Shown here: positions 13,109 to 41,749 of the stretch, in pieces
Numbering within the stretch: position 1 is the stretch's first letter
Layout of the letters: each line of letters starts with the position of its first letter
From: Macrostomum lignano
Lineage: Eukaryota
Direction: 5' to 3'
Assembly (NCBI GenBank): GCA_002269645.1
Contig: NIVC01000398.1
Location: 1-64,000, forward strand
DNA: 64,000 nt
Notes under the pieces: model-generated
Database searches by the model: none
What the model was told of the DNA's origin: nothing
The model's input: only the letters and a program-made list of their open reading frames with translations
Position numbers and translations under genes: made by a program

Positions 13109-13155
13109 TATCTGTTTTCGAACTTAAAAGCGACGAATAATTAATAAGAATGCAC

Positions 13156-17150: not shown

Positions 17151-17829
17151 TCCTTATCTATCGCACCCCCTGTTTATGCCCCTTATCTCACACGTCATCG
17201 CCCCCCCTTAGGATTGCTTTTGAATGTCAAACTAAGTGCCAATAAACAGAATGCTTTAATGTTATTTGTAGTAACCTGACTGGAATAAATTACAGCTAGA
17301 GAACATTCGGTAGTATTAATTCTTGTGAAATAAATACAGTAACTATCCAATAGTAAGTATTGCAGCTTCTGACAAAACTAAGATAAATAGTTTTTTAATC
17401 AGGCAAAAAGCGGAAAAAAAACAAAAAACATCATAGATTGCTTGGTTGAGTAAGATTTATTCATATATAAAAACATGCATAAAATTCTATTATTACAACA
17501 AGTTAAAAGGTATAGATTTAAAATATTTGATTAAAAATGAATTGTAGCAAAATAATGAATCGATAATCTTATTCTAATGCATAAATCGTCTGTCCAACTA
17601 GCCTCGAAGATTAAACCTATTAAAAGGCCGTGTCGTTTTCGGGTAGCATTAGTTCCAAGAATTTCTGAAAAAAATTTTACACATGTATTTACTTCAACTC
17701 ACATATGCGAAAAGTTATAATATAAAAAATCTTTTTTCACTCTTGCAGATCACTCTAAACCGATTTTCACACTTGCATATTCCTTCAAACCGTCTAGTTT
17801 CTACTAACTGGCAAACTTTGCGACTTTCT

Positions 17830-18250
17830 ACCCCCACCACGTTGTCTATGACCCCTTTTTTCATGCCCCACCACCTTTCTATCCCTCTCCACTGACTGTC
17901 TACGGCCCTTATCTCTCACACCCACCACCTCTCTATCCCTCTCCACTGACTGTCTATGGCCCTTATCTCTCACACCCACCACCTCTCTATCCCTCTCCAC
18001 TGACTGTCTATGGCCCTTATCTCTCACACCCACCACCTCTCTATCCCTCTCCACTGACTGTCTATGGTCCTTATCTCTCACACCCACCACCCCTCTATCC
18101 CTCCCCACTGACTGTCTATGGCCCTTATCTCTCACACGCACCACCTTTCTATCCCTCCCCACTGACTGTCCATGGCCCTTATCTCTCACACCCACCACCT
18201 CTCTATCCTTCTCCACTGACTGTCTATGGTCCTTATCTCTCACACCCCCT
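17830..18250. repeat. 54-bp minisatellite, block 2
   Basis: Tandem periodicity with the same unit family as block 1. Confidence 0.9.
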
Positions 18251-18708
18251 ACGAGAAGCTTCCGCACTTGCCTCCACACTTACCCTGGCAAACTCAGGCC
18301 CAGTGGCAAGGGTCTCCCCGCCAGGCAGCAGCCGCACGCCGTCAACGGTGGCTTCAACGTTTTCAACAGCATTAGCACCGTCGCTGCACCCGCCGTCACC
18401 CGACTGTTGCGTTAGCAAGCGGAACTGACGACGCACAGGCGGAACTGAAGCTGCAGCAGCTCCAGCCGCCTCTACGTGCAGCTCAATCAAGCGAGCAGTT
18501 GTTAGCAGTAGTCCGGAGTTCGAATCCACGGCTACAATTTGCTCGCTTGGACAGCATCGACCAAGTTGATGAAGCAACGCGGCAGCGGACGTCGCTGAAC
18601 TGTCGGGCGCGTCGACATCGACAATGGAAATCGGCGTCGATTTTGTTGACGACAGAGCCGACTGCATCCGCGATGACAGTTGAACAGGTGTAAACTCTTT
18701 GCGACGCA
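18233..18708 (-). CDS. VPS13: VPS13-like exon 19 (PH-like C-terminal domain, stop at 18233)
   Basis: TTTTGTAG|TG phase 1. AAALLHQL..GLLLTTARLIELHV resembles the VPS13 C-terminal PH fold. An internal donor AGG|GTAAGT at 18284 could lead to another last exon. Confidence 0.75.
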
Positions 18709-18944
18709 CTACAAAAGATTTTTTGGAGTTTTTTGGATAACTTCAAATACCAATCTTGCTTAAGTTCTTTGACAGAACTCTTAACTAAATTAACGCTAGT
18801 ATTCAACCTTGGAAATTTTTGTTCCACATGGAGGAGAAAATATTTTGCAAAAATCTTTAGAAGACGATTAGGGAGTTTTTCTGGATTTTTTTCTGGAAGT
18901 TTCTGGAGCAATCTCTGAAAAATTCTGGGAAATCCCTGAGGAGT

Positions 18945-19235
18945 TCTAGGGGAAACCCTGATGAGTTCTGGTTCTGGGGGAATCCCTGATGAGTTCTGGG
19001 GGAATCCCCGAGGAATTCTGGGGGAATCCCTGAGGAATTTTGGGGGAATCCCTGAGGAATTCTGGGGGAATCCCTGAGGAATTCTGGGGGAATCCCTGAG
19101 GAATTCTGGGGGAATCCCTGAGGAATTCTGGGGGAATCCCTGAGGAATTCTAAGGGAATCCCTGAGGAATTCTGGGGGAATCCTTAAGGAATTCTGGGGA
19201 ATCCCTGAGGACTTTTTGGGAAATTCCAAGAGACT
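18945..19235. repeat. 22-bp minisatellite (GGGGGAATCCCTGAGGAATTCT)n, intronic
   Basis: Tandem periodicity. Confidence 0.9.
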
Positions 19236-19361
19236 TCCAGGGGGAATCGCTAAGAAATTTTTAGAAAATCGTTAGAGGGAGCCCTGGATTCTTCCATAAA
19301 ATTTGCTGGGTAATATCGTCAATAAATCAACTAAAAATGAGAATATAGAAAAATAACTCAC

Positions 19362-19762
19362 GACAGGTGCCGAGCAGGCAGCCCAGCGGCAGGGTGACGG
19401 CCATCCCTGGCCGACGCTTAATCAGCCGCTTGAACTCCCTTCTGGCCCACTGCTGGGCGTCGCCACCGTCGTTGTCCGGCCAGGCGACTCCGAGAGCGTT
19501 GCCAGCGGGAACCGTGGCTCGAAGACGCCAGCCGTTGCCTTGGGCCGCAGATTCTGACGTTCGCAACGGCAGATTTTCGGCGTACAAACGCAGATTGCGC
19601 AACAGTTGGAACCGGTCGATGCGAACACCACTCGATGGCGCGTCAGACTGGGGCGTCAGCGTGGCCAGCAGGCGGACGAAGAACGCCGGGTCGTAGCAGA
19701 GGTCCAGGCGACCGAGTGCGAGCGACATCTCAGAGATGTGCAGCGGTGGCGGCTGGGCAGAC
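19362..19762 (-). CDS. VPS13: VPS13-like exon 18
   Basis: HISEMSLALGRLDLCYDPAFFVRLLATLT resembles RIKYFKVLIQEMDLRLDLGFIYALTDLMT. It ends LPLGCLLGTC, like ILGLDVLGNP. Phases 2/1. Confidence 0.85.
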
Positions 19763-19779
19763 CTGGGTGATGTAAATTC

Positions 19780-20025
19780 AGCGATGGACTATCTAAGATT
19801 AGCGATGGATTATGTAAGATTAGCGATGGATTATCTAAGATTAGCGATGGATTATCTAAGATTAGCGATGGATTATGTAAGATTAGCGATGGATTATCTA
19901 AGATTAGCGATGGATTATCTAAGATTAGCGATGAATTATCTAAGATTGGCGATGGATTATCTAAGATTAGCGATGGATTATTTAAGATCAGCGATGGATT
20001 ATATAAGATTAGCGATGGATTATGT
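19780..20025. repeat. 21-bp minisatellite (TAAGATTAGCGATGGATTATC)n, block 1
   Basis: Tandem periodicity. Confidence 0.95.
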
Positions 20026-20344
20026 CCAGGCCTGGGCTGCGGACCCTCCGCAGCAGGCCCAGTATCCGTTCTCCCACTGACTAAGCAGCACCGATTGCTC
20101 CCCTCACTGACTCACCCGAGTCACCCCCACTGCACGCTCCCCATTGCTTCATGCTACATATCTCCTGTACGTTTGTGTTCGTGCCACAGCACGCCTATAC
20201 GTTTCGGGCCCCAGAGCCCAGAAATATAACGGTAAACACGACCGCCTCAGTCTCTCCACTTTTTGTACTGACTGCCTGCCTGCTCACGGGATCCGCTCCC
20301 AGGCAGAGCTTTGAACTAAACTCCAAGACTCACTTTCAAGTCAT

Positions 20345-20790
20345 TACAGATTATATAAGATTAGCGATGGATTATATAAGATTAGCGATGGATTATGTAA
20401 GATTAGCGATGGATTATGTAAGATTAGCGAAGGATTATCGTAGATTAGCGATGGATTATGTAGGATTAGCGATGGATTATCTAAGATTAGCGATGGATTA
20501 TCTAAGATTAGCGATAGATAATATAAGATTAGCGATGGATTATGTATGTAGGATTAGCGATAGATTATCGAAGATGAGCGATGGATCATATAAGATTAGC
20601 AATGGATTATCTAAGATTAGCGATGGATTATATAAGATTAGCGATGGATTATGTAAGATTAGCGATGGATTATGTAAGATTAACGATGGATTATATAAGA
20701 TTAGCGATGAATTATCGAAGATTAGCGATGGATTATATAAGATTAGCGATGGATTATGTAGAATTAGCGATAGATTATCGAAGATTAGCA
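20345..20790. repeat. 21-bp minisatellite, block 2, same unit
   Basis: Tandem periodicity. Confidence 0.95.
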
Positions 20791-20797
20791 GACTCAC

Positions 20798-22443
20798 GCT
20801 CCATCATCCTCGACTTCAGCAGAACCGGCAGCAGCCATGCAGACTTTCAAATCCGCTCCTAAAAGACGACCTTCACCAAGGACGTCAGCTTTAGGCCTTG
20901 CCTTCAAGGACAGCGGCACCCTGAACTGGTCGGGCGCCTGAGGACACGACTGGTCCACCTGCAAGCGGCCCAGCTTGATCTGGAATCGAACTGGACGATT
21001 AACTTCTCCTTTGTCAGGCTGTTGCGAAAATTCGACTTGCCCGACAAATCCAGGAAGGCAGCGTCGGTAGAGACGTCGCAATTTCGGCTGTAACATCGTC
21101 ATGCCGACCTCCATACTACTGCTAATACTACTGCTAGAAGTAATAGCGTTGTCATTGACCAATTGTTCAAAACAGACTCTCCATTGGTCGGAATCGACCA
21201 GCTCCACTGACGATTGATTTGACAATACCGACGAGACCGGCGTAGACAGCCAGCGTCGGTAAAGCCGTTCGACAGCAGCCGCTGCGTCGGGTTTCAATCG
21301 CACGAAACGACGCTTGCCGCCAGTTAATTTGGTTTTCAACCATACGGGATTGACGTTATCGATGGTGAGGTTGGCAACGTTTCTACAGCCTCTGCCGGAG
21401 CCTCTGCAGCGCTGGCAAGCTGCGCCGTCAGGCGTCGTTGTCGTTGTTGTCAGTAGGTTCGAATCCAAACGTAACAGAATGCCAATGCTGTGCAGGTCGA
21501 CGCGGAACTTCCACGCTTGGCTTCCGTTTCCGGTTCCGGTTCCATTCTCGCGTCCAGTACCGTCACCTGACCCACTTCCGGTTCGATTCTCGCGTTTAGT
21601 TCCGTCACCTGACCCACTTCCGGTTCGATTCTCGCGTCCAGCATAGTCACCTGACCCACTTCCGGTTCGATTCTCGCGTCCAGCATAGTCACCTGACCCA
21701 CTTCCGGTTCGATTCTCGCGTCCAGTTCCGTCACCTGACCCACTTCCGGTTCGATTCTCGCGTCCAGTTCCGTTACCTGACCCACTTCCGGTTCGATTCT
21801 CTCGTTCAGTTCTGTCACCTAACCCACTTCCGGTTCGATTCTCGCGTCCAGTATCGTCACCTGACCCACTTCCGGTTCGATTCTCGCGTCTAGTTCCGTC
21901 AACTGACACGCCTCCGGTTTGAGTTTCTCGAACAGTATTCCCATTTGAACCACTTCCGGTACGATTTTTCCGTCCATTTCCGTTACTAGAAATAGTTCCG
22001 GTTTGATTTTTGCACTTACTAGCGTCATCGGAACTATTTCCAGTTGGTTTCTCTTGTCCAGAATCGTTACCATTAAAGCTATTGGGTGGTTCATGTTCAG
22101 TTTCATTTCCTGCCACATGTACACGTCCGATCTCGTCATTTTTAGTACTTGGTCTACTTCCGGCAAACGCTTGACGCAAATTTTCGACTAACTGAGCGAT
22201 CGCAGCGGCAACGGCAGGCGACACGACCAAGCAGATTCTGTGAAGCGGACAGGACAGCATTACGGATGTAACATCGGCAGACCAGTTGGCCTCGAGTTGG
22301 AATCGCGGATAAGTGCAGTTCGACTGATAGCTATCAGATGAAGGAGTCTCCAGAATCAGCAGAGGCTCTTCAATGAGTTCCGCGCTTGTGCTGGTCAGCG
22401 AGGCGCTGGCGGATGGGCGTTCGAAGGTCGCAGAGCAGGAGGC
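20798..22443 (-). CDS. VPS13: VPS13-like exon 17 (1646 bp; repeat linker, WWE-like insert and C-terminal RBG region)
   Basis: Open from CTGCAG|GCC to GC|GTGAGT. FRVDLHSIGILL, NVANLTIDNVNPVW, AVERLYRRW, MTMLQPKLRRLYRRCLPG and FQIKLGRLQVDQ align by eye with the VPS13A post-VAB segment. Confidence 0.9.
21530..21960 (-). repeat. Coding 42-bp tandem repeat (RENRTGSGSGDGTG, about 9 good and several degenerate units) inside VPS13 exon 17
   Basis: Unit CACCTGACCCACTTCCGGTTCGATTCTCGCGTCCAGTTCCGT. The frame is preserved throughout. Confidence 0.9.
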
Positions 22444-22454
22444 CTGCAGTTAAG

Positions 22455-22690
22455 ACGGGAATGTGTAGACAAAGATGCAAGGATACAGAAAGGACACACA
22501 GCACAGATGCAGACACAAGGACACAAAGAAAATATAAGGCACGAGGACACAGATATAAAGAGACAAGGACACAAGGACACAAAAACCAAAACACAAGAAG
22601 AGGACACAAGAACACAGACACGAGGATACAAAAACACAGAGAGAGACAATTGCCAGGTGCAAAGCCAAACAGACATGCTGACAGAACACT
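22455..22690. repeat. Degenerate CA/GA-rich simple repeat, intronic
   Basis: ACACAG/GACACA-rich low complexity. Confidence 0.7.
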
Positions 22691-22721
22691 ACGGCTAAAA
22701 GAGATGCTGGCCCACACTCAC

Positions 22722-22835
22722 ATGTTCAAAGCCAACTGTGAGATGGTCAAGGCTAAACGCAACGCTGCCTGCGCCAGTGGGTGAGTCGCCAATCACCATG
22801 GAAACGGTCTTTGTAGCGACAGTCAAGCTGCCAAA
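22722..22835 (-). CDS. VPS13: VPS13-like exon 16 (absent from the ORF track)
   Basis: FGSLTVATKTVSMVIGDSPTGAGSVAFSLDHLTVGFEH. TTTTCAG| to |GTGAGT, phases 0/0. Confidence 0.8.
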
Positions 22836-22993
22836 CTGAAAATTAGCAATGTCATTTAGGAATTTATTATAACTTCGCAGAACACTGTTGGCAAAATAGT
22901 CGCGCGTGCAACATACTACTAGTAATTAAAATGTCAGTAGTATTTTATATTAACAATCACAACAAATCAGATTAAATCAGTTTAAAGCACATA

Positions 22994-23422
22994 CTAAAAT
23001 AACTAAATGGGCCACTCAGCACATTTGCGTGCAAGCTACTTTCAGTTCAGTAGTAAGTCAAACTAAAGCGTTTTAATGCATTTTTAAAGCCATTTAAACT
23101 CATTTATTGGCTAAAGCCCAAACCGCGCCTTTCCACACTACCCCACCACTCCGCCCGCCCCAATTTTTATTGCCTTTCTCGGAATTCCAGCCTAAAGCTG
23201 CCATGTACAGTTCAGTGGACTGGGCAATGTACATTGTGGCTAAACCAATTAGCAAGTTGTTTACACTTGCAAGCTTTGGCTTCTAAACTTATCAAAGTCA
23301 TTTCAGCTGCCTTTAATTTTATAAAACAGCTTATGTATTCTTCTTTGCTACTGAACTGAAAGTAGAAAGCTGTTTTACTTAGTAAATGTGCCTGCTGCAG
23401 TTGTCCATCTAGATAATTCTAT
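22994..23422 (+). mobile_element. TA-flanked MITE, family copy 2
   Basis: Homologous to 12679-13108 over its length, with the same TIR and TA flanks. Confidence 0.8.
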
Positions 23423-23430
23423 TATGTATC

Positions 23431-23531
23431 AGATTAAACATGCCTTTTGAGGGAGTTATTTGTATAAATCACGAGGGCCTGAGGCCCGAGGGATTTATGA
23501 AAATAACTCCCGAAAAAGGCATGTGTAATCT
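23431..23531. repeat. About 100-bp imperfect palindrome (hairpin-type mini element)
   Basis: AGATTAAACATGCCTTTTGAGGGAGTTATTTGTATAAATC pairs with GATTTATGAAAATAACTCCCGAAAAAGGCATGTGTAATCT around a GGCCTGAGGCC centre. Confidence 0.85.
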
Positions 23532-23839
23532 CGTATAAACCATAGACATTAAGACTTTGCGGGATATTATTGAATATTACCAAATAAAATCCCGGAGAAC
23601 GCAAATATTGTCACGGAAAGTCTTTATTTCTATGGATTATCTGTGGTTTATGGTAAAAAGATTTACACTACACTCAACAAGAGTTTTTATTAGTCTTCAA
23701 TACTCAGTAGGCATGCAAAATTATAGAAAGAAACATTCAACACCATTAACACGGTGTGGGTATTGAGTAGATAAATTTGACTAGCGCCAAACAAGCAGAG
23801 CTTGAGTTTTGTAATTAGCATATTTCTATCTATCATTAC

Positions 23840-23874
23840 CATCTTAGATGAGGCTGGAGACGCTGAGGTGGTGG
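23840..23874 (-). CDS. VPS13: VPS13-like exon 15 (35-bp micro-exon, tentative)
   Basis: TTGCAG|CC..ATG|GTAATG supplies the phase 1-to-0 link needed between exons 14 and 16. Confidence 0.5.
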
Positions 23875-24134
23875 CTGCAATATTGGCGACTCGTGTTGTA
23901 AAAAAACTTGGCAGAGAAATGAAAATATTTAAAAAATAAGACAAAAAACAGAATAACTACTCATATTAAGGCAAGTGTGCGTGCAATTTTGTTTTAATAA
24001 TAACTAATCTACATTGAATTACTTTTTCAAACTCATTTAAACTACTTTAAGTAGTTTGATTTCTTTTAAAATAATAATTCAAGGCAAAAGCTTGGACAAA
24101 TAAAGAATCATTAAAATAGCAACTGCTCTCTCAC

Positions 24135-24288
24135 CAGCGGTCTGTTGAGGCCTTAGCAACGGTTGCCAAGTGTTGACAATGGAAACAGCGCTACTCACAG
24201 CGGAAGGAGCAATTCGAATATTGAGTCGTGATTTGAAGATCAAAGTAGGAGCAGGCAGCGATAGACAAATAGTCTCGGTGCTGAGCAG
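24135..24288 (-). CDS. VPS13: VPS13-like exon 14
   Basis: LLSTETICLSLP...NTWQPLLRP, similar to the VPS13 WEPLIEP motif. CGCAG| to |GTGAGA, phases 0/1. Confidence 0.8.
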
Positions 24289-24359
24289 CTGCGAGTGTTG
24301 GGGCAACAGGTTCAACAGGTAAACAAAATATTTTCATTGTCCGAACAAAATCTCACAGT

Positions 24360-24640
24360 TCGGCATCAAAATCTCACCGCAAGACTGCATTTCGATCAAA
24401 ATCTCACCGCAAGACTGCATTTCGATCAAAATCTCACCCTAGATTCCAATCTGGGATAGAATTCTCACCCTGTGATTAAAACCTCACCCTTTGATCAAAA
24501 TCTCACTCTATAATTAAAATCTCATTATGTGATCAAAATCTCACCCTGTGATCAAAATCTCATTATATGTTCTAAATCTCACTCTAAGCGCAAAATCTTA
24601 CCATGTGATCGAAATCTCACAACTAGATCACAGTTAAGGA
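24360..24640. repeat. Degenerate tandem repeat with an ATCAAAATCTCAC core
   Basis: Recurring motif at roughly 24-34 bp spacing. Confidence 0.75.
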
Positions 24641-24725
24641 TAAAAATTTCACCCACATCCCCAGTAAAAATCTAGCCAATGGGGAACTTTGCAAGCTAAC
24701 AAACTGTCGACCTTCAAACGCTCAC

Positions 24726-25021
24726 CTCAATACCATCAGCAATCGCAGAATCCTGAAGTGTCATTGGCTTCCGCAAGACATCATTATAAAAGGTCAAACA
24801 AAGATCAGTCAATTCTGTCTCGCTAAATGAGCCGTTGAAACCGCCAAGTTGAAAGCAAAATGCGTTGCCGCCGCCGCTAGCAGTTTGGTTGCCATGGTTA
24901 CTATTTGGCTGGGGGCGGGCATTTTGAAAAATTTGCACACGCAACGCCGAAGTTTCAACGCTCAGCGCGGGCGAAAATCGCTGCTCTGGCGAGGCTGCCG
25001 CGGCTGCGACCGACGATGGCT
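24726..25021 (-). CDS. VPS13: VPS13-like exon 13
   Basis: PSSVAAAA..LSVETSALRVQIF..FCFQLGGFNGSF..LTFYNDVL. TCTCCAG| to |GTGAGC, phases 1/0. Confidence 0.8.
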
Positions 25022-25132
25022 CTGGAGAAAAGAATAGAAAAAATACTACTCTTACTACTCAATAAAAGTTTCTCAGTAGACATGCGGAGAAAATAGCTGT
25101 ATCCTTGCTATAAGCAAAGAAAAAAATGAAAA

Positions 25133-25396
25133 AAGACAGACAGACTAACAGACAGAAAGACAGGACAGACAGACAGACAGACAGACAGACAGATAAGACA
25201 GATAAGACAGACAGACAGGACAGACAGACAGACAGGACAGACAGACAGACAGATAAGACAGACAGACAGACAGATAAGACAGATAAGACAGACAGACAGG
25301 ACAGACAGACAGACAGACAGACAGGACAGACAGACAGACAGACAGATAAGACAGACAGACAGACAGATAAGACAGATAAGACAGACAGACAGACAC

Positions 25397-25438
<42 letters not shown>

Positions 25439-25460
25439 GGACAGGCTACAGGCAGACAGA
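25133..25460. repeat. (GACA)n/(GATAA) microsatellite
   Basis: Direct reading. Confidence 0.95.
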
Positions 25461-25466
25461 ACCTAC

Positions 25467-25681
25467 CAGTTTCCCGAGGCTTGGCTTGGTTGCTAGGCGC
25501 GGGCTGACCCTGAGCAGCCATCGTTGCCATGCAGTCGCTAAGCAGAGGCAGCTCATCAGGCCACAGCCGCAATTGGCAGGCTGCCAACCTGACTGTCAGC
25601 GAGCGAGGCAAACTGCGAATCGATAATAGATCGGTAGGTTCGGAGTTCGAGTCCGACTTCGAGACGCTGCGACTGAAGATG
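25467..25681 (-). CDS. VPS13: VPS13-like exon 12
   Basis: IFSRSVSK..LTVRLAACQLRLWPDELPLLSDCMA. TTCCAG| to |GTAGGT, phases 2/1. A micro-exon near 25741-25767 is possible. Confidence 0.8.
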
Positions 25682-25804
25682 CTGGAAGATGCGAAAAAAG
25701 ATAATGGCACTGTTGGGGAGTACACGCGTACTTTTCGCTTACGTGTACAGGTAGGTAGTCAGGACTAATCTGGCTTCAGCTTCGGTCATCCGCTTAAACG
25801 CAGT

Positions 25805-26205
25805 CTAGATACCTCTCAGATACAATCTAGATACCCTCAGATGCAATCTAGATACCCTCAGATGCAATCTAGATACCCTCCCAGGTGCAATCTAGATACC
25901 CTCCCAGGTGCAATCTAGATACCCTCCCAGGTGCAATCTAGATACCCTAAGATACGATCTAGATACCCTCCCAGGTAAAATCTAGATACCCTCAGGTGCA
26001 ATCTCGATACCCTCTCAGATTCAATCTCGATACCCTCTCAGATACAATCTAGATACCCTCAGATGCAATCTAGATACCCTCAGATGCAATCTCGATACCC
26101 TCAGTTGCAATCTTGATACCTTAGATGCAATCTAGATACACTTAGATGCAATCTAGATACCCTCAGATGCAATCTAGATACCCTCAGATGCAATCTAGAT
26201 ACCCA
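25805..26205. repeat. 21-23-bp minisatellite (GATGCAATCTAGATACCCTCA)n
   Basis: Tandem periodicity. Confidence 0.9.
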
Positions 26206-26227
26206 CTCAAAACTAGCCAAGCCTCAC

Positions 26228-27081
26228 CTCCATCTGTCCAGCGGCTCTCTCTGGACGTCGCCCTCGCCCTCGCCCTCGCTCTCGTCATGCGCCACGGCCT
26301 CAACGCCGGCGTCAGCCAGCCGAAGCTGCCAGATCGTTGACGGTCGTTGCCGACGCAGCACCAAGCCGACGGAGCAGGCTCCCAAGGACAGGTCGTAGGC
26401 CCACCTGGTGCCCGCAGGCTGGCCCAGCTGATCAACTCCATCAACGGAATCCTCGCCGCTCTCGGCGATCTCCGACGCCGCTAGCGAAGCAATCGACAGC
26501 AAATCGGATCGATTGGCTACAAGCCTTAGTCCGGGCGTTTCCATGGCAACAGCCAGCCAAGTTTGGCAACAATGCTCGTCAGAAATGGTGGCATCCGAGC
26601 ACCGCAGCCTGGCAATCTGAGCAGTGAGCACCGGCTGCTCATTACCGATTTTATTACCGTCGCTCTCGCCGTAAAACCGAAGCAGTCTCGAACTATTTCC
26701 GAGTTGGTTGCTACCCTGCCCGGCAACCACAAGATCGCCAACGCGGCTGCCCGCGGCCAGCTGACAGACCGAGGCCGACAAGCCAGAGATTCGAACCCGC
26801 AACTCATCAGCCAGTAGAGCCATGTCGGATAATGACGTCATCACCGCATCCTCTGAGGTGAGCAGCTCCTTCAAAGCCGGCCGACTGTAGCCGAACTCGT
26901 AGAATTGCACGGCATCAGTTGTGTCATCGGGATTTGACTGAGCAGAGGAGCTGGTGCTGCTCAACAACAGGCTGCCCAAGTCTGTGTACAGGGCGCGGTT
27001 TCCGGCGCCGCCACGGAGCGGCAGGATGAGTCGAGGCGCGCTGATCTCAGCCCGGGCTGTCAGGCCGCCGGCTTGGCGAAT
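26228..27081 (-). CDS. VPS13: VPS13-like exon 11
   Basis: LTARAEISAPRLILPL..ALYTDLGSLLLSS, a typical VPS13 repeat motif. GCCAG| to |GTGAGG, phases 0/2. Confidence 0.9.
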
Positions 27082-27158
27082 CTGGCAGGTTTTGAAAATT
27101 CAACAAAAAATTCATCGACATACTGTATCTGAGGAAAAAATTATTTTTATAAACTGAC

Positions 27159-27251
27159 CTCAGTCTGGGCCGATTCAAGTACGTCGCCAGCTTGCCAGTT
27201 TAAGCGAGATTGTAGCTGCTCCAGCGGCTCTTGAATTGAAGTGCTGAACTC
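27159..27251 (-). CDS. VPS13: VPS13-like exon 10 (93 bp, absent from the ORF track)
   Basis: EFSTSIQEPLEQLQSRLNWQAGDVLESAQTE. CCCAG| to |GTCAGT, phases 0/0. Confidence 0.75.
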
Positions 27252-27299
27252 CTGGGATTTTTTTAATGGCTGGATGTTCACGTATTAAATAATTTTAAA

Positions 27300-28095
27300 G
27301 TGGGTCATCTAGGGTCTCGACGGTAGGAAGGCCACTCAAGTTCATTTAAGGTCGGTCACGGGGTTGCATGCTCATTCAAGGTCATCTAGGGTCGCTAGAG
27401 TTGAATGATATTTCAAGGTCATTTAGGTTCAAGAAGGTTAGATTGCCAGTCAAGGTCATTGAAGGTCAAAAGGGTTATTCGCCAATATTCAAGGATAATG
27501 ATAATAGATTATCATTAAGGGTATCTAAGGTCACGAGGGTTAAATACTCATTCAAGGTCAGCTAAGGACACGGGGGTTACATCGTCATTTAAGGTCCTCT
27601 AGGGTCACGAGGGTTGAATGGTAAATGGTTATTCAAGGTCATCTAGAATCGCGAGGGTTCGATGATCATTTTAGGTCATCTAGGATCACGAGGGTTGGGT
27701 GGTCATTTAAGGTTATCTAGGGTCGCGAGGGTTGGATGGTCATTCAAGGTCATTTAGGGTCGCGTGGGTTGGGTGGTCATTCAAGGTCATCTAGTGTTGC
27801 AAGGGTTGGATGGTCATTCAAGGCCATCTAGGGTCGCGAGGGTTGGATGGTCATTCAGGGTCATCTGGGGTCGCGAGGGTTGGATGGTCATTCAAGGCCA
27901 TCTAGGGTCGCGAGGGTTGGATGGTCATTCAAGGTCATTTAGGGTCGCGAGGGTTGGATGGTCATTCAGGGTCATCTGGGGTCGCGAGGGTTGGATGGTC
28001 ATTCAAGGCCATCTAGGGTCGCGAGGGTTGGATGGTCATTCAAGGTCATTTAGGGTCGCGAGGGTTGGGTGGTCATTCAAGGTCATCTAGGGACG
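27300..28095. repeat. 37-bp minisatellite (GGTCATTCAAGGTCATCTAGGGTCGCGAGGGTTGGAT)n, degenerate at the left
   Basis: Tandem periodicity. Confidence 0.9.
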
Positions 28096-28177
28096 CGAAT
28101 GCTGTTGATTAAAGACATAAAGTTTTGTTTAACAAGCTCAGGTGAACCAGGTTCATAATAGTAGGCATATTAATTAC

Positions 28178-28642
28178 CTTCAGCCCAGCCATCAGCTCGG
28201 GCAAAAGTACAAGCTGCACTTTATTCAATTTGCAGTCAATATCCAATCGGCTTGGGCCGGGACCAGCTGGCCAACTGGTAATCCGAATTCTGGCCACAGG
28301 CTCGTCAGGCAAATCGGCTAATAACGGCTTGGCGTACAGTCGACGCCTTTGCCGATTGGGCACCAGACAGGATCGGCCAGTGTCCGCTTCTAAACCGGTG
28401 CACTCCAGCTGTAGTTCGCGTTTCAGCCGGTACTCCGTCATAGCACCACCAGTCGATGCCGGCCGCTCGTAGGTGGCCGAAGCTTCGATGCGCAGCTCGG
28501 ACAGCCGGCACACGCACAGGATCTGGTGTTCGGCGGAGGCCAAATCCAGCCTGGCATTGGTGAGCCGCAGCTCCAGGCTGACTGGAGGCGGCGGCGACTG
28601 GCGAATGCGGCGGTGCGGCCGCGCCGGGCCGTCTTGGGAATG
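28178..28642 (-). CDS. VPS13: VPS13-like exon 9
   Basis: VSLELRLTNARLDL...LDIDCKLNKVQLVLLPELMAGLK. GCAG| to |GTAATT, phases 0/0. Confidence 0.85.
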
Positions 28643-28699
28643 CTGCGGCTGATTGATGGGTGGGGATGGTACTCAAGAGTAGCAGGCAATAATAGGGGT

Positions 28700-30600
28700 T
28701 GTGTCCTAGCATCTGTCCTAGTGTCTGTCCCAGTGTCTGTCCCAGTGTCTGTCCCAGTGTCTGTCCCAGTGTCTGTCCCAGTGTCTGTCCTAGTGTCTGT
28801 CATAGTGTCTCTCTTAGTGTCTGTCCCAGTGTCTGTCCTAGTTTCTGTCTTAGTGTCTGTCCTAGTGTCTGTCCCAGTGTCTGTCCTAGTGTCTGTCTTA
28901 GTGTCTGTCCCAGTGTCTGTCCTAGTGTCTGTCCTAGTGTCTGTCCCAGTGTCTGTCCTAGTGTCTGTCCTAGTGTCTGTCCTAGTGTCTGTCTTGGTGT
29001 CTGTCCCAGTGTCTGTCCTAGTGTCTGTCCTAGTGTTTGTCCTAGTGTCTGTATTAGTGTCTGTCCTAGTGTCTGTCATAGTGTCTGTCTTAAGTGTCTG
29101 TCATAGTGTCTGTCCTAGTGTCTGTCATAGTGTCTGTCATAGTGTCTGTCTTAAGTGTCTGTCCTAGTGTCTGTCCTAGTGTCTGTCCTAGTGTCTGTAT
29201 GCCTGTCTTAGTGTCTGTCCCAGTGTCAGTCCCAGTGTCTGTCCCAGTGTCTGTCTTACTGTCTGTCCCAGTATCTGTCTTAGTGTCTGTCCTAGTGTCT
29301 GTCCTAGCGTCTGTTTTAGTGCCTGTCTTAGTGTCTGTCCTAGTGTCTGTCCTAGTGTCTGTCGTAGTGTCTGTCCCAGTGTCTGTATGCCTGTCTTAGT
29401 GTCTGTCCCAGTGTCTGTCCTACCGTCTGTTTTAGTGTCTGTCTTAGTGTCTGTCCTAGTGTCTGTCCTAGTGTCTGTCGTAGTGTCTGTATGCCTGTCT
29501 TAGTGTCTGTCCTAGTGTCTGTATGCCTGTCTTAGTGTCTGTCCCAGTGTCTGTCCCAGTGTCTGTCCCAGTGTCTGTCCATGTGTCTGTCTTAGTGTCT
29601 GTCCCAGTGTCTGGCCCAGTGTCTGTCCTAGCGTCTGTTTTAGTGTCTGTCTTAGTGTCTGTCCCAGTGTCTGTCCCAGTGTCTGTCCTAGTGTCTGTCC
29701 CAGTGTCTGTCCCAGTGTCTGTCCCAGTGTCTGTCCCAGTGTCTGTCCCAGTGTCTGTCCTAGTGTCTGTCCCAGTGTCTGTCCTAGCGTCTGCTTTAGT
29801 GTCTGTCTTAGTGTCTGTCCCAGTGTCTGTCCTAGTGTCTGTCCCAGTGTCTGTCCCAGTGTCTGTTCTACCGTCTGTTTTAGTGTCTGTCTTAGTGTCT
29901 GTCCCAGTGTCTGTCCCAGGGTCTGCCCAGTGTCTGTCTTAGTGTCTGTCCCAGTATCTGTCTTAGTGTCTGTCCCAGTGTCTGTCCTAGTGTCTGTCCC
30001 AGTGTCTGTCCCAGTGTCTGTCCCAGTGTCTGTCCTACCGTCTGTTTTAGTGTCTGTCTTAGTGTCTGTCCCAGTGTCTGTCCCAGGGTCTGTCTCAGTG
30101 TCTGTCCCAGTGTCTGTCCTAGCGTCTGTTTTAGTGTCTGTCTTAGTGTCTGTCCCAGTGTCTGTCCCAGTGTCTGTCCCAGTGTCTGTCCCAGGGTCTG
30201 TCCCAGTGTCTGTCTTAGTGTCTGTCCCAGTGTCTGTCCCAGTGTCTGTCCCAGTGTCTGTCCCAGTGTCTGTCCTAGTGTCTGTCCCAGTGTCTGTCCT
30301 AGCGTCTGTTTTAGTGTCTGTCTTAGTGTCTGTCCTAGTGTCTGTCGTAGTGTCTGTATGCCTGTCTAAGTGTCTGTCCTAGTGTCTGTATGCCTGTCTT
30401 AGTGTCTGTCCCAGTGTCTGTGCTAGTGTCTGTCCCAGTGTCTGTCCCAGTGTCTGTCCCAGTGTCTGTCCCAGTGTCTGTCCTAGTGTCTGTCCCAGTG
30501 TCTGTCCTAGCGTCTGTTTTAGTGTCCGTCTTAGTGTCTGTCCCAGTGTCTGTCCCAGTGTCTGTCCCAGTGTCTGTCCTAGTGTATCAATGTGTCTGTC
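28700..30600. repeat. 12-bp minisatellite (GTGTCTGTCCYA)n, about 150 copies
   Basis: Tandem periodicity. Confidence 0.97.
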
Positions 30601-30629
30601 TGTCAGTCAGTCAGCAGAGCAGAACTCAC

Positions 30630-31001
30630 GGCAAGCACAGGCGGCGGCAGTGGCAGGTCGGCAAGCCGGTTGCACACGTCTTCGGCCAGGTGCAGACAGC
30701 CAGCCAGACAGTCGGGCTGCAGACAGGCTCCCAGAGCGTCCAGTTGAGTTTCCGCCGACATTCGTTCGGGCGACACCACGGCCGACAGGCTGAGAAAACC
30801 GAAATCTTCGCCCGGGATTTTATAGGGCACCCGCTTCGGACGCTTTACAATTTTTGCGCCTTGTGTCTCAAATCCCGAATCGGCAACTTCGACCGCATCG
30901 AGCTGGCTGCTAAGCAGGCGAAGAGGTCGACTGCAATCCAGCTTGGAGCCCGCGCCCACCGGCTGCGGGTGAGCCAAATCCTGGTGGGATGCGGAGGGTG
31001 T
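30630..31001 (-). CDS. VPS13: VPS13-like exon 8
   Basis: ...LRLLSSQLDAVEVAD...LDALGACLQPDCLAGCL. CTCAG| (alternative acceptor about 30980) to |GTGAGT, phases 0/0. Confidence 0.8.
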
Positions 31002-31002
31002 C

Positions 31003-31240
31003 TGAGGATTACAGCAGGTGAATCATGAGGATTACAGCAGGTGAATCATGAGGATTACAGCAGGTGAATCATGAGGATTACAGCAGGTGAATCATGAGGA
31101 TTACAGCAGGTGAATCATGAGGATTACAGCAGGTGAATCATGAGGATTACAGCAGGTGAATATTGAGGATTACAGCAGGTGAATATTGAGGATTACAGCA
31201 GGTGAATATTGAGGATTACAGCAGGTGAATATTAAGGATT
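31003..31240. repeat. 23-bp minisatellite (GAGGATTACAGCAGGTGAATCAT)n filling almost a whole intron
   Basis: Tandem periodicity. Confidence 0.95.
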
Positions 31241-31269
31241 TACAAAAATGTTTGAGATTCTAGTCTCAC

Positions 31270-31606
31270 CTCAACCGACAGCAAGTCCACAAACAGTCTG
31301 GCCTCAAGCCAGTTAGGCTGTTTCACCGCATTCAATCGCAGCCTTTCAATCAGAGCCTTCAACTTCGTGGTCTCCATGGTAACAACCAACTTGTTAACTA
31401 CCGCGTAAGCCTGCCATTTTAGCGGGCTCTCAATCTTGTTGGGATTTTCTTGCTCATGCTGTTTGGAGAAATTCGGCAGAACAGAAGGCACGCCCAGCAG
31501 ACTGGTTAGAGATGGCCCGCTCCACTTGGCTGCCCCGGCAACGGTTGCTAGGGCCTCAGGACTCAGCCGTAGTTGAACTATTTGGGTTTTGAAGACTAAC
31601 GACATT
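31270..31606 (-). CDS. VPS13: VPS13-like exon 7
   Basis: MSLVFKTQIVQLRLSPEALATV...LEARLFVDLLSVE. CGCAG| to |GTGAGA, phases 2/0. Confidence 0.85.
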
Positions 31607-31694
31607 CTGCGGAATAGTTTAGTAAATTAGTAGACACCGTTAGATTGATATAACTAAAGGTCTAACATTAAAAACCGTTCTAATCCAATTACCC

Positions 31695-32400
31695 TATTAT
31701 AAGCTACCAATACCAATTATAAGCTACCAATGCCCCAATTATAAGCTACCAATACCAATTATAAGCTACCAATACTCAATTATAAGCTACCAATGCCTAA
31801 TTATAAGCTACCAATGCCCAATTATAAGCTACCAATGCCCAATTATAAGCTACCAATACCAATTATAGGCTACCAATGCCCAATTATAAGCTACCAATGC
31901 CCAATTATAAGCTACCAATGCCCAATTATAAGCTACCAATGCCCAATTATAAGCTACCAATGCCCAATTATAAGCTACCAATGCCCAATTATAAGCTACC
32001 AATGCCCAATTATAAGCTACCAATGCCCAATTATAAGCTACCAATGCCCAATTATAAGCTACCAATGCCCAATTATAAGCTACCAATACAAAATCATAAG
32101 CTACCAATACCAATTATAAGCTACCAATACTCAATTATAAGCTACCAATACTCAATTATAAGCTACCAATACTCAATTATAAGCTACCAGTACTCAATTA
32201 TAAGCTACCAGTACTCAATTATAAGCTACCAATACTCAATTATAAGCTACCAATACTCAATTATAAGCTACCAGTACTCAATTATAAGCTACCAATACTC
32301 AATTATAAGCTACCAATACTCAATTATAAGCTACCAGTACTCAATTATAAGCTACCAATACTCAATTATAAGCTACCAGTACTCAATTATAAGCTACCAA
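31695..32400. repeat. 21-bp minisatellite (AATTATAAGCTACCAATGCCC / ..ATACTC)n
   Basis: Tandem periodicity with two variant blocks. Confidence 0.95.
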
Positions 32401-32442
32401 TATCTCTATAATAAGATACCAAAATCGCATCTCACTACTCAC

Positions 32443-32933
32443 TTTGGCAAATCCATAGGCGCATTAACGCCAAAACCGCAGGCGATTGCGGCATCAACAA
32501 TGGGCTTATCGATGCACTGATTGGCAACAATTCTCAGCCTAAGCGTCAGTTGGTGCACTGAGTTGGGCGCAGTTTCAGGCGCCAGGCACAACTGTCTGAG
32601 ATGCTCATCAACCAGATTGGACTCTGCAGGGCCGGTCTTCAGCCACAGCAGTTCCACCTCGTCCATCAGGCAGGTGAGCCCCCGGTCCGACGACAGAGGT
32701 CCGGTGGGCAGGTGAAACGACAAGCCGTCCAGGTGGCCGCGGAATCGGTGCCGATCTTTTTCGGCAGTGCCGCCAGATCGACCAGCGCCGTTGCGACCGA
32801 CGCCGCGACGTGTGAGAAAGCGCAGAGTTTTGAGCAGCTCCTCGTCAAGTTCCGGCTCAGCTTCCTCGGCCTCATCGGCGGCCGAGGATGAGGATGACAC
32901 TTGGAAAAAGTTGGCTAGGCGATTTGCCGTGGA
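32443..32933 (-). CDS. VPS13: VPS13-like exon 6
   Basis: STANRLANFF...FRGHLDGLSFHLP..LTCLMDEVELLWL. AACAG| to |GTGAGT, phases 0/2. Confidence 0.85.
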
Positions 32934-33024
32934 CTGTTGGGTATTGATGGAGGGGTAGAGGGTGCGTGTAAAAATCAAGGCGTCAGCCGGCCGGCCTCTC
33001 TGCGACGGAGAGGCGACTGTTGCG

Positions 33025-34040
33025 CGTCACATGAGTTATAGAATTGTAAAAGAGCCGCGAAAAAAGTCCTCCTAATAATCGTTGTGTTGGCGCTTAACTT
33101 TCTACTAACTTAGTAGGCTTAATAAGAGTTCAATAGGCTACACCACAGGTACTAGAATAACTAGATGGGCACTCACGCATATATACTCAGTATAACAGCT
33201 TTCTACCTACTTTCAGTTCAGTAGCAAAGAAGAATACATAAGCTGTTTTATAAAATTCAAGGCAGCTGAAATCACTTTGATAAATTTAGAAGCCCAAACT
33301 TCCAGGCGTAAACACCTTGCTATTTGGTTCAGCAGAAATGTACATTGGCCAGTCCACTGAAATGTACATGGCAGCTTTAGGCTGGAATTCCGAGAAAGGC
33401 AATAAAAATTGGGGCGATGCGGGGGGGGGGTAGTGTGGTAGGCGCGGTTGGAGGGTTTAAGCTGGAGATAAGAGGCAATAAATGAGCCTTGGCTTGGCTT
33501 TAAAAATAAATTAAAATGCTTCTGTTTAACTTACTACTGAACTGAAAGTAGCTTACATGCAAATGTGCTGAGTGGCCCATCTAGTTGATGATGGAATCCA
33601 GTGTTTCTACAGCGCCTCTAGCACGCCTCAAATACGACTCTCTCAGTCGCAGACAATAAAACGCTTCAATGTGATCCTTCGGCGACTTTTTGACGACTCT
33701 GAGTCGTCTAGAGTTACTTCTCTCTTATCATACTTGTTACCTGCAACGACTCTGAAAACTGGCCCCTGAGCATGCACACACGATTAAAACGGTACCTAGG
33801 GCTAAGAAGCGTCACATACTACTTGCGTTGCCCCAAAGTTGTTTCAGATTCGTTGCAGGTTGCAGAGTTGTAACTGAGGCGTTCCAGAGCCGCTGTAAAA
33901 TCGCTGAGTTGCGTCCAAAGCGCACCAGTGTCACTCTATGAATTTTAGAATTGCATTTCGCATTTAGTAGAAAGTTAAGCGCTAACACAACGACTGGTGG
34001 ACGACTTTTTCGCAGCTATTTTATGGTTTTGCAACTTAGG
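33025..34040. mobile_element. Degenerate inverted-repeat element hosting MITE copy 3
   Basis: GTCGTTGTGTTRGCGCTTAACTTTCTACTAA at about 33085-33108 is inverted at about 33962-33992. A related sequence lies at 58070-58290. Confidence 0.55.
33152..33590 (-). mobile_element. TA-flanked MITE, family copy 3 (inverted)
   Basis: Reverse-complement homology to copies 1 and 2. Confidence 0.8.
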
Positions 34041-34243
34041 TGATCCGCTCTCAATACAGTCGTTTGAGTTGTCAAAAAAACAAGAGTTACCCATCGTACA
34101 TCGTATAGAGACATCGGCTCTAACTTTCCCTAATATCTCACACTTTGCATATCATATTATTGTACACGACTAGCCCCATGCCCAATTGTTGTGTACAAGC
34201 CCGCCCAATTCCGGAAATTAGAGATTTTTGCATTAAAACTCAC

Positions 34244-34430
34244 AACGCAATGCACAATGCGACAGGCTCCAATATCCAGGATGTAGGGCGATTTGTCTGG
34301 TCGGCAGAGTTTAACAAATTTTGACTGGCCGTTTGGCAGCTTGGTGTGACAACAGCGGCAGGCCTCTGTGGCAACCAGCTGCCTGCCATCGTAGCCGAGT
34401 GCCGACAGGGAGCCTAGCGAAGCTTTCAGG
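34244..34430 (-). CDS. VPS13: VPS13-like exon 5
   Basis: [15 protein letters not shown]...[20 protein letters not shown]| to |GTGAGT, phases 2/0. Confidence 0.8.
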
Positions 34431-34474
34431 CTGTGGAGGATAGATAGAATGAATGTTTGTGTGTGGCATGGAGC

Positions 34475-34501
34475 ACAGACAGACAGACAGACAGATAGAT
34501 G

Positions 34502-34541
<40 letters not shown>

Positions 34542-34554
34542 CACACATAGATAA

Positions 34555-34591
<37 letters not shown>

Positions 34592-34592
34592 C

Positions 34593-34668
<76 letters not shown>
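34475..34668. repeat. (GATA)n microsatellite
   Basis: Direct reading. Confidence 0.97.
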
Positions 34669-35024
34669 TCATCGCAGTCAGCAGTTTTTCAAGGTAAAAG
34701 CGAAACTTAGTGAGTTTATTTGAGACCACTGTGTACTTTTATCTGTTATCTGTTAAGCACATGCGGGTTCGCCCTCTCTGTCTTATAAGCGTACTCACCT
34801 GTACTTCTTAGCGATCCGCTTTAAACTGGCTTCAATTTTATCCAATTTCACGTCTAAGATAGAAGTCCGACTGCAATGTAGAAAAAAGTCGTAAAATTCT
34901 GCTACATTCTTTTAGAACATCAGGAAATTGTCAAAAACATTACATAGTGAGTGTTCTGGCGCACTTTTTTAGCGAAAATTATTTTTGTGCTTTCAAATCC
35001 ATTACAGATTTCATTATCAAGGTA

Positions 35025-35420
35025 TTAATTCCTAATTAGAGATCCAGTTATTCAAGGTATGAATCCCTAATTAGAGATCCCATTATTCAAGTTATTAATC
35101 CCTAATTAGAGATCCCATCAACAAAGTATGAATCCCTAATTAGAGATCCCATCAACAAAGTATGAATCCCTAATTAGAGATCCCATCATCAAAGTATGAA
35201 TCTCTAATTAGAGATCCCATCATCAAAGTATGAATCTCTAATTAGAGATCCCATCATCAAAGTATGAATCCCTAATTAGAGATCCCATCATCAAAGTATG
35301 AATCCCTAATTAGAGATCCCATCAACAAAGTATGAATCCCTAATTAGAGATCCCATCATCAAAGTATGAATCCCTAATTAGAGATCCCATCATCAAAGTA
35401 TGAATCTCTAATTAGATATC
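35025..35420. repeat. 34-bp minisatellite (AATCCCTAATTAGAGATCCCATCATCAAAGTATG)n
   Basis: Tandem periodicity. Confidence 0.95.
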
Positions 35421-35489
35421 CAACAAGGTCATGTGAAGCGACTGTGAAGCGAAAATCACCAAAAAGTACATCCCCTGAGTACTGCTCAC

Positions 35490-35662
35490 CCTTCGCGCAG
35501 TGCAAAGCAGATTTGATCAGCGTCCAGCATTACTTTCGCATTAAACTGGTTAGCAGCGGCACCAGCAGAGTCGCTATCTCTATTGCGACTAAAGCCAGCT
35601 GCACTGGAATCAGCGCCTCTGGCATTGTTGGTGGCTGCGCGAACATCTTGACGGAACAATCT
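35490..35662 (-). CDS. VPS13: VPS13-like exon 4
   Basis: RLFRQDVRAA...FNAKVMLDADQICFALRE. CGCAG| to |GTGAGC, phases 0/2. Confidence 0.8.
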
Positions 35663-35747
35663 CTGCGATATAGATATAGTGTATAGCACATAAATGGTTA
35701 GAAAAATCACACTAAATTTTATTTCTTGTAAAATAAAAAACACTTAC

Positions 35748-35930
35748 ATTAAGTCTATCAACTTGGCCAGTAAGCAAGTCGTATTGTTTACTAGTCATGT
35801 CGAATTTGAAACCGCGAATAAAAATTTTTAGTACCGCTCTTGGTTGGGCGTTTGTTTCTATTAGACTGACGTTCAGACTGATTGATAGAGGCTGAAGCAC
35901 TGCAATGTAGCGTTTGGTGACCAGTTTTCG
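35748..35930 (-). CDS. VPS13: VPS13-like exon 3
   Basis: RKLVTKRYIAVLQPLSISLNVSL...FKFDMTSKQYDLL. AACAG| to |GTAAGT, phases 0/0. Confidence 0.85.
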
Positions 35931-35949
35931 CTGTTAGTTGGGAGCGAGA

Positions 35950-36415
35950 GTACATTGAGGTAAGGGTGTTGGGGGCTAAACTGGAGTGAGTGTACGTTGG
36001 GGCAGGGGATTGAAGCCTAGAGGGGAGTGAGTGTACATTGGGGCAGGGGGTTGGGGCCTTGATAAGAGCGAGTGTACATTGGGGCAGGTGGTTGGGGCCT
36101 AGACGGGAGTGAGTGCACATTGTGAAAGGGGGTTGGGGCCTAGACTGGAGTGAGTGTACATTAGGGCAGGGGATTGAAGCCTAGACGGGAGTGGGAGTGA
36201 GTGTACATTGGGGCAGGGGATTGGGGCCTAGACTCGAGTGAGTGTATATTGGGGCAGGGGGTTGGGGCCTAGACTGGAGTGAGATTACATTGGGGCAGGG
36301 GGTTGGGGCCTAGACTGGAGTGAGATTACATTGGGGCAGGGGGTTGGGGCCTAGACTGGAGTGAGATTACATTGGGGCAGGGGGTTGGGGCCTAGACGGG
36401 AGTGAGTGTACATTA
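35950..36415. repeat. 41-bp G-rich minisatellite (GGGGCAGGGGGTTGGGGCCTAGACTGGAGTGAGTGTACATT)n
   Basis: Tandem periodicity. Confidence 0.9.
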
Positions 36416-36769
36416 AAGTTTTTGAAAGGGATACAAATCGCGAATAATTTATTTACCGTGATGAAATTTCAAACTGTGACCGGTAAATACTTCCGACATT
36501 GCTGCTTTAATATCGTCCTGAAATACAATTAGAAATATTTCCTTTTCCGTTAAGTAAATTCAGTCTTTCTAGAACATAAAAGTAAAAAATACAAAACTAA
36601 ACAACTGACATGCTGACTTTGCTGGCTCAGCGGAGGCGACAAGTGCATTGTCAATGAGTGCAATTCGACCGACTGGAATGAATGGTTTTGAAAATTGAAA
36701 TTTACGAGCTGTCATTCGAAGTTACAAATTATTGGCAATACATTAATGGCGAAAAGCTCCACTACACCT

Positions 36770-38215: not shown

Positions 38216-38275
38216 CAAGCCTCATCATTCCTTAACTATTAAAACGCCCATATACACGAACAAGCAGATATTTAC

Positions 38276-41484: not shown

Positions 41485-41660
41485 AGCAAGCATCCCCCAG
41501 ATAGCAAGCATCCTCCAGATTGCAAGCAACCCCCGGATAGCAAGCATCCCCCAGATAGCAAGCATCCCCCAGATAGCAAGCATCCCCCAGATAGCAAGCA
41601 TCCCCCAGATAGCAAGCATCCCCTACATAGATAGCATCCCCAAATAGCAAGCATCCACCA
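41485..41660. repeat. 18-bp minisatellite (CCCCAGATAGCAAGCATC)n
   Basis: Tandem periodicity. Confidence 0.9.
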
Positions 41661-41749
41661 GACAATAAGTAGCTAGTGCGACAATTTCCTTAGCATTATA
41701 GTGGCTCCTTTAAAATTTGCTTACTTTTATGTTTGAAATTGTGTAAATT

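Follow-up and report, generated by a model that had tools for sequence, protein, structure and literature searches.

The gene BOX15_Mlig009510g1 (protein PAA83878.1) of the flatworm Macrostomum lignano lies on the minus strand of contig NIVC01000398.1 (assembly GCA_002269645.1), where it takes up ~25 kb of the 64,000-nt stretch analyzed here (positions 1 to 64,000, hereafter the window, in whose coordinates all positions are given). Its product of ~2,400 residues contains a long low-complexity insert built almost wholly from copies of one 14-residue unit. The explanation that we favor, and hold to be fairly probable, is that an in-frame coding minisatellite has inflated one surface loop of a protein that is known only from Macrostomum and is possibly of the repeating β-groove (RBG) kind. 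The initial annotation of this DNA had read the insert as the replacement of a deleted VAB, the adaptor-binding domain of VPS13 proteins; that replacement is not supported by our sequence comparisons, and the insert does not appear to mark the position of a lost VAB.

The insert is a tandem array of a 14-residue unit

The G/S/T/N/R-rich stretch was correctly located by the initial annotation at 21520-22164 within one exon; on the minus strand the translation gives 215 residues (AGSRPSTKND...GTGNGS). The complete insert has 216 residues (composition G53 S28 T26 R24 N23) and is followed and preceded by segments of ordered appearance. Its parts, as defined by Tandem Repeats Finder (TRF), by the register of the units, and by translation, are as follows.

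20798..22443, minus strand: insert-bearing exon, 1,646 nt, the largest exon, with AG/GT borders; aa 1577-2124 of the 2,414-aa model
22165..22221, minus strand: SPAVAAAIAQLVENLRQAF, amphipathic helix-like segment preceding the insert, with strand-like RICLVV before it
21517..22164, minus strand: whole low-complexity insert, 216 aa (aa 1670-1885), between ...SPAVAAAIAQLVENLRQAF (...LVENLRQAF) and AWKFRVDLHSIGILL (AWKFRVDL)
22060..22164, minus strand: non-repeat head of the insert, AGSRPSTKNDEIGRVHVAGNETEHEPPNSFNGNDS, 35 aa
21892..22059, minus strand: four old, increasingly degenerate 14-aa units, GQEKPTGNSSDDAS, KCKNQTGTISSNGN, GRKNRTGSGSNGNT and VRETQTGGVSVDGT (BLOSUM 32, 22, 52 and 34 versus the consensus)
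21556..21891, minus strand: young core of the minisatellite, made up of eight near-perfect 42-nt units (GRENRTGSGSGDGT; TRF and register reading)
21514..21555, minus strand: last, degenerate unit GRENGTGTGNGSQA, whose final residue A falls outside the 216-aa insert
21466..21510, minus strand: KFRVDLHSIGILLRL, amphipathic β-strand-like segment resuming the ordered part after the insert (translation)

TRF reported a single array at 21534-21983 (period 42, 10.7 copies, 84% matches, 0% indels, score 604), and the consensus 42-mer with up to 3 mismatches occurs 6 times, all within this array, with 0 occurrences expected from shuffles. Read in register, the array contains 11 clear 14-aa units, in agreement with the ~9-12 copies first proposed, and two older degenerate units upstream of these bring the total to 13 (aa 1705-1886). 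The two oldest units score BLOSUM 32 and 22 against the consensus, compared with a maximum of 25 and a 99.9th percentile of 19.5 for the rest of the protein. With 13 units in register, just 35 residues of the insert have no repeat origin, the other 181 of the 216 being derived from one unit. The array is graded, with the old degenerate copies on the 5′ side and the eight young copies on the 3′ side, and every unit carries RTGS, an R-x-x-S motif.

With 181 residues copied from one unit, the ancestral loop would have been ~35-50 aa long, which is the usual size of the other polar stretches in the protein. There are ~16 of these, of 26-59 aa, and the insert is the sole stretch exceeding 60 aa. 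Strand-P-helix motifs like the one that precedes the insert also occur at aa 534, 779, 975, 1496, and 1954.

Three copies of the gene (window/L002, L001, and L003) are present in the assembly; they are collinear and ~95-99% identical including their introns, as expected from the duplicated chromosomes of the DV1 line (PMC5730564). The L001 paralogue has a matching 488-aa open reading frame (ORF) for the insert exon, of the same length and ~96% identical at the nucleotide level. A length-variable loop had been suggested initially, but the insert is exactly 216 aa long in 3/3 genomic copies of this DV1 assembly, among which we saw no variation in array length. There are two array haplotypes, and both the haplotypes and the units differ mostly by non-synonymous changes.

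The array is read in one frame with its flanks

The insert and both flanks lie in one exon and share a single frame, which is open in 3/3 genomic copies. The gene models deposited in GenBank for this assembly were drawn up from RNA-seq data and from transcriptome assemblies mapped to it (PMC5730564). Among them, PAA62105.1 (P0005) contains all the units, and UniProt A0A1I8JDS6 (P0007) matches the window without a difference throughout the array. All models retain the insert's non-repeat residues, along with at least 5 of the 11 clear units in the same frame, and no gene model adds other exons at the insert position. The feature is thus an exonic minisatellite, with a unit that is a multiple of 3, read in frame and present in transcript-derived models, and the initial description of a coding in-frame minisatellite forming a low-complexity linker holds.

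Two kinds of model depart from the genomic sequence within the array. PAA50818.1 (P0001, L001) and PAA83878.1 (P0004, window/L002) each fall exactly six units (252 nt) short of the sequence at their genomic loci, and the UniProt models P0002, P0008, P0009, and P0010 carry the array in a second frame (TELDARIEPEVGQV x ~8) by means of two frame switches (21450-22166, minus strand). In L001 this sole other open frame runs for 238 aa, but in the window copy a stop interrupts it at ~21819-21821; its use looks like a gene-prediction artefact. Both departures, together with the GT and AG dinucleotides found in the unit, could be taken to mean that the repeat is wholly or partly missing from the mature protein, either as an intron-like segment within the exon or because the full-length models are themselves annotation artefacts. 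We regard this as decidedly unlikely. The 252-nt gap sits wholly within identical units, which makes a collapse of short-read transcripts plausible, and such a gap is what is expected when collapsed transcripts are mapped by BLAT (PMC5730564); the six-unit gap is therefore probably a collapsed transcript mapped with a gap. P0005 and P0007 moreover have all the units, every model keeps the non-repeat part and at least five units in the same frame, and the alternative frame is interrupted by the stop in the window copy.

The insert does not appear to mark a VAB site

The initial annotation compared the segment before the insert with the helix just before VAB, and the segment after it with the strand just after VAB. 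We slid these two motif segments along human VPS13A, using shuffled targets as the null; the VPS13A sequence was confirmed against PDB chains 9yg4_B, 9yfw_B, and 9yg5_B and gorilla VPS13A (99% identity). The helix segment scored best at VPS13A residues 773 and 1649 and reached only 10-11 at the pre-VAB site, as against a shuffled median maximum of 18. The strand segment scored best at residue 489 (KFFVHLKSMSIVL, 28) and then at 278 (23), with the post-VAB site third at 21, inside its null (median 19, 95th percentile 26). Because the VAB-border scores sit within the shuffle null and other positions of VPS13A score higher, the two motifs look like a generic RBG-unit boundary (strand-helix-loop-strand) that carries no signature of the VAB site. 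Neither resemblance was upheld, and the alignment to VPS13A that had been proposed as a check gave no detectable homology of the flanks either to the last part of VPS13_M or to the region that follows VAB, whether with Pfam fragments, phmmer, or a profile.

The protein itself has no detectable VAB, as had been claimed. VPS13_M, VPS13_VAB, ATG2_CAD, and VPS13_C gave no Pfam match, whether the query was the full protein, any of its 10 overlapping fragments, or one of five paralogous models, absence of VPS13_VAB being taken as no match at E<=10; in the 529 aa following the insert neither the C-terminal amphipathic helices (ATG_C region) nor the PH-like domain (VPS13_C) was detected. As a positive control, human VPS13A (3174 aa) gave VPS13_VAB at E 5e-47, with VPS13_M at 1064-1861, VPS13_VAB at 1944-2452, and VPS13_C at 3036-3149. 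A six-frame translation of the 64-kb window searched for VPS13 gave nothing above noise and no VAB-like coding potential, so that the proposed check for an array that is spliced out, with VAB exons lying elsewhere, found the insert coding sequence retained in the models and no VAB in the window. VAB consists of six β-sandwich repeats and is the feature that tells VPS13 from ATG2 (Levine 2022, PMC7613979); as it is undetected here, the protein cannot be filed as a VPS13. With flanks that have no detectable homology to the VAB borders and an insert that is almost wholly a young array, the deletion of VAB and its replacement by the minisatellite are not supported.

The host protein is faintly VPS13-like at its N terminus

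The sole Pfam signal in the protein, from queries with single exons, the complete sequence, its fragments, and the paralogous models, is VPS13_N (PF12624), with 15-21 bits and E-values of 4.6e-3 to 7.3e-5 over the whole library (curated cutoff 80 bits), the better value being obtained with the N terminus encoded by the upstream first exon. The match aligns aa 132-198 with profile positions 123-187 and continues in a second collinear stretch, within aa 1-450, at the correct N-terminal offset. A phmmer comparison with human VPS13A alone aligned aa 144-199 to residues 126-185 (E 0.006 at Z=1) through the motif HVCYED..KPL..G, again at the same offset. Windows of β-amphipathic pattern are enriched (z 2.5 and 1.7), as they are in parts of the VPS13A groove (z 2.2 and 1.8). 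These observations suggest that the host is a very divergent RBG, or bridge-like lipid-transfer, protein, an assignment that we consider probable but unproven. The VPS13 identity implied by the initial annotation survives in part: the N terminus is faintly VPS13-like, whereas VPS13_M, VAB, and VPS13_C all go undetected.

Searches for relatives returned only the flatworm itself. When aa 1-1200 were compared exhaustively by phmmer with 1.84 billion representative proteins, two M. lignano self-matches were the only result. Two word-based searches, one with 1,839 aa joined from the exons and one with the C-terminal half, likewise gave M. lignano copies only; the orthologues that the initial annotation proposed to check for the same replacement did not appear. 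In the PDB no relevant sequence match turned up, ATG2A included, for the complete protein, for its first 431 aa, or for the 529 aa that follow the insert. A forced alignment to VPS13A as input for structure prediction was rejected, as its outcome would follow from the alignment itself. The automatic UniRef names of the gene family conflict with one another (“FSA_C domain-containing” for full-length proteins, “VPS13 domain-containing,” “VPS13_C domain-containing,” and “Uncharacterized” among P0004, P0006, P0007, and P0002) and served only as leads; none of the named domains is reproduced by current Pfam.

Alternative explanations

A number of observations weigh against an inflated loop in a bridge-like protein. 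The VPS13_N signal lies far under the Pfam cutoff (21 versus 80 bits) and is lost in fragments of 250-300 aa. A small VPS13 profile built for the purpose did no better than shuffled sequence (E 0.04); it was started from a human and yeast alignment, collected mammalian VPS13A only, and was no more sensitive than a single sequence. AlphaFold2 run without an alignment on aa 1300-2330 of P0001 gave a mean predicted local distance difference test (pLDDT) score of 33, too low to show that the insert is disordered or that the groove is continuous; within this unusable model the sole stretch with a 10-residue block-average pLDDT >50 is the pre-insert segment SPAVAAAIAQLVENLRQAF, a helix in the model. 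The mostly non-synonymous differences between units fit weak constraint and give no positive sign of function, and some mRNAs may lose a portion of the array, as an alternative account of P0001 and P0004. Several of these points bear on whether the host is a bridge-like protein at all. It could instead be a fast-evolving lineage-specific orphan with a chance VPS13_N match, the repeat being a disordered segment; a VPS13_N score of a quarter of the curated cutoff, a purpose-built profile no better than shuffled sequence, the lack of any homologue outside M. lignano in the exhaustive and the two word-based searches, and the lack of a PDB sequence match would all agree with this. We nevertheless think it unlikely, given that the Pfam E-value is small (7.3e-5, whole library), that the match falls at the right N-terminal offset and covers the hallmark ...HVCYED..KPL..G., found independently with human VPS13A, and that the size, the lack of other domains, and the β-amphipathic pattern suit an RBG rod.

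The opposite view is that the protein is a true VPS13 descendant, in which the VAB repeats of the RBG10/RBG11 loop were deleted and the minisatellite now sits in that loop. The VPS13_N-like N terminus speaks for it, but the VPS13_M profile, which ends immediately ahead of VAB, gave no match, and neither did the post-VAB region or VPS13_C. VAB went undetected in the protein and in the VPS13 search of the window, as it should after such a loss, but both motif resemblances are non-site-specific and no relative with VAB at this place emerged from searches that gave M. lignano copies alone. The insert is by far the longest loop of the protein and lies ~530 aa from the C terminus, compared with ~650 aa after VAB in human VPS13A, and VAB has been described as an insert in an inter-RBG loop (PMC7613979); yet 181 of the 216 residues are recent copies of the unit and leave no apparent remnant of a 500-600-residue domain. 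The UniRef names for gene-family fragments include “VPS13_C domain-containing” and “VPS13 domain-containing,” but they are inconsistent, with “FSA_C domain-containing” among them, and are not reproduced by Pfam. Taken together, these points make the VPS13 descendant very unlikely. The fuller version, a stripped-down VPS13-derived bridge that has lost VAB, ATG_C, and PH altogether and in which a repetitive, possibly phosphorylatable linker replaces the VAB loop, we judge to be highly improbable; if it were true, the protein would be a natural experiment on contact-site targeting of a bare groove with a flexible multivalent loop.

Proposed origin of the insert

Under the explanation that we favor, a coding minisatellite inflating one surface loop, the starting point would have been an ordinary loop of ~35-50 residues after a helix that closes a strand-rich unit. 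This would correspond to the RBG unit, which has five strands and then a sixth element that starts as a helix and continues as a loop (PMC7613979). The loop could have grown in frame through replication slippage or unequal exchange, and its G/S/T/N/R-rich product would be intrinsically disordered, forming a flexible polar linker. Such an insert would be tolerated because the sole requirement is to join the helix to the next strand, and the ordered segments on its two sides may remain able to pack against each other, a behavior reported for RBG units that flank long loops. Disordered loops are held to account for the length variation in the BLTP1/Tweek family (PMC7613979), and simple and tandem repeats make up ~15% of the M. 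lignano genome (PMC5730564). The RTGS in each unit makes phosphorylation possible, and it is speculation that the insert serves as a spacer or offers a multivalent surface for phosphorylation or binding.

If the host is truly a bridge-like lipid-transfer protein, it would be an unusually bare and fast-evolving member of the superfamily, and would show that an inter-unit loop can absorb a tandem expansion of 180 residues. A minisatellite-rich genome can evidently seed in-frame exonic repeats. The comparison with VPS13A also indicates that short motif resemblances among β-groove proteins are no evidence for a specific domain boundary.

Gene model and genomic surroundings

With the paralogue PAA50818.1 as a guide we assembled a model of 22 exons, in which the introns are GT-AG and the frame of 2,414 aa is intact; it runs from 38884 to the terminal exon at 17620-17664. 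Public models show two starts, either MTRFLRFFVGILYY... (exon 42742-42823 joined to the acceptor at 38778) or MMHSINSK... directly from 38884. The splice signals of the upstream first exon are a GAGG|GTAAGT donor and a CCCAG| acceptor.

17620..42823, minus strand: whole gene BOX15_Mlig009510g1, with a product of ~2,406-2,414 aa set by the choice of first exon
42742..42823, minus strand: alternative first coding exon MTRFLRFFVGILYYIQQHFSFRALLREG, spliced to the internal acceptor at 38778; in models P0004, P0005, and P0006
38276..38884, minus strand: first large exon, with the chorein-like motif (LDLVHYNIGSIEL ... IEVHQLHVCYEDKSDESKPLLAGVAF) and the alternative start MMHSINSK
17620..17664, minus strand: terminal coding exon KFLELMLPENDTAF and stop, with AATAAA at 17456-17461, 159 nt downstream

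The public gene models of the locus show problems, with collapsed repeat units, frame-switched readings, and two first exons. Downstream of the annotated stop there are three open stretches of 128-172 codons (15261-15644, 13005-13409, and 11907-12422, minus strand) that are ~99% identical between the paralogous copies, have no Pfam match, and are in no gene model. As the non-repeat DNA is ~99% identical everywhere, conservation between copies is no guide to their coding status.

Tandem repeats are abundant in the surrounding DNA. In the 64-kb window TRF gave 47 rows at a score >=200, which amount to more than 30 distinct arrays whose periods range from 4 to 211 nt and whose lengths reach 3.2 kb. 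They are almost all intronic, nearly every intron of the gene having one, and their periods are mostly not divisible by three. Examples from TRF are:

28702-30585: minisatellite
36754-38157: minisatellite
53428-54792: minisatellite
58316-61537: minisatellite

Translation of the minisatellites yields spurious ORFs and spurious Pfam matches (KH_BICC1, Tachystatin_B). A GC-rich ORF at 5157-6041 (plus strand) has a weak reverse-transcriptase match (RVT_1, E 1.3e-5), and an 88.7%-identical copy of it lies at 21903-22778 of L001, inside the gene span of the L001 paralogue; because this copy has no counterpart at the corresponding place in the window, the ORF is taken to be a retroelement fragment. 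A dispersed element of ~440 bp (82-86% identity, ORF fragment ...SKEEYIS.F....) occurs in both orientations in several introns and downstream of the gene:

window 12676-13115, 22993-23421, and 33139-33586: copies of the ~440-bp element
L001 15102-15542, 29653-30114, and 39327-39776: copies of the ~440-bp element in the paralogous locus

Comparison with known systems

The flatworm protein resembles the VPS13 family (VPS13A-D and yeast Vps13) in its large size, in having no N-terminal transmembrane helix, in its faint VPS13_N/chorein-like N terminus, and in its recurring strand-helix-loop units. Mammalian VPS13A proteins have VPS13_N, VPS13_M, VPS13_VAB, and VPS13_C, and many also have ATG2_CAD, whereas the flatworm protein has no detectable VPS13_M, VPS13_VAB, ATG2_CAD, or VPS13_C and is ~750 aa shorter than VPS13A. 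ATG2 proteins are ~1,900-2,300 aa long, the human ATG2A chain 8kbx_B having 1,938 aa. With ATG2 and SHIP164/BLTP3 the flatworm protein shares a faintly chorein-type N terminus without VAB repeats and, probably, long disordered loops; it differs in having no sequence match to either, with no Pfam match to ATG2_CAD or ATG_C and no PDB match to ATG2A.

The array itself compares with exonic variable number tandem repeats (VNTRs) in its in-frame unit of a multiple of three, its mostly non-synonymous differences, and its old-to-young grading. Classical VNTRs are defined by copy-number variation, of which none was seen in the three M. lignano genomic copies. As a loop, the insert is of the kind held to explain the length differences within the BLTP1/Tweek/Csf1 family (PMC7613979). 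BLTP1, however, begins with a transmembrane helix and is much longer, and the flatworm loop is a young tandem repeat in place of generic low-complexity sequence.

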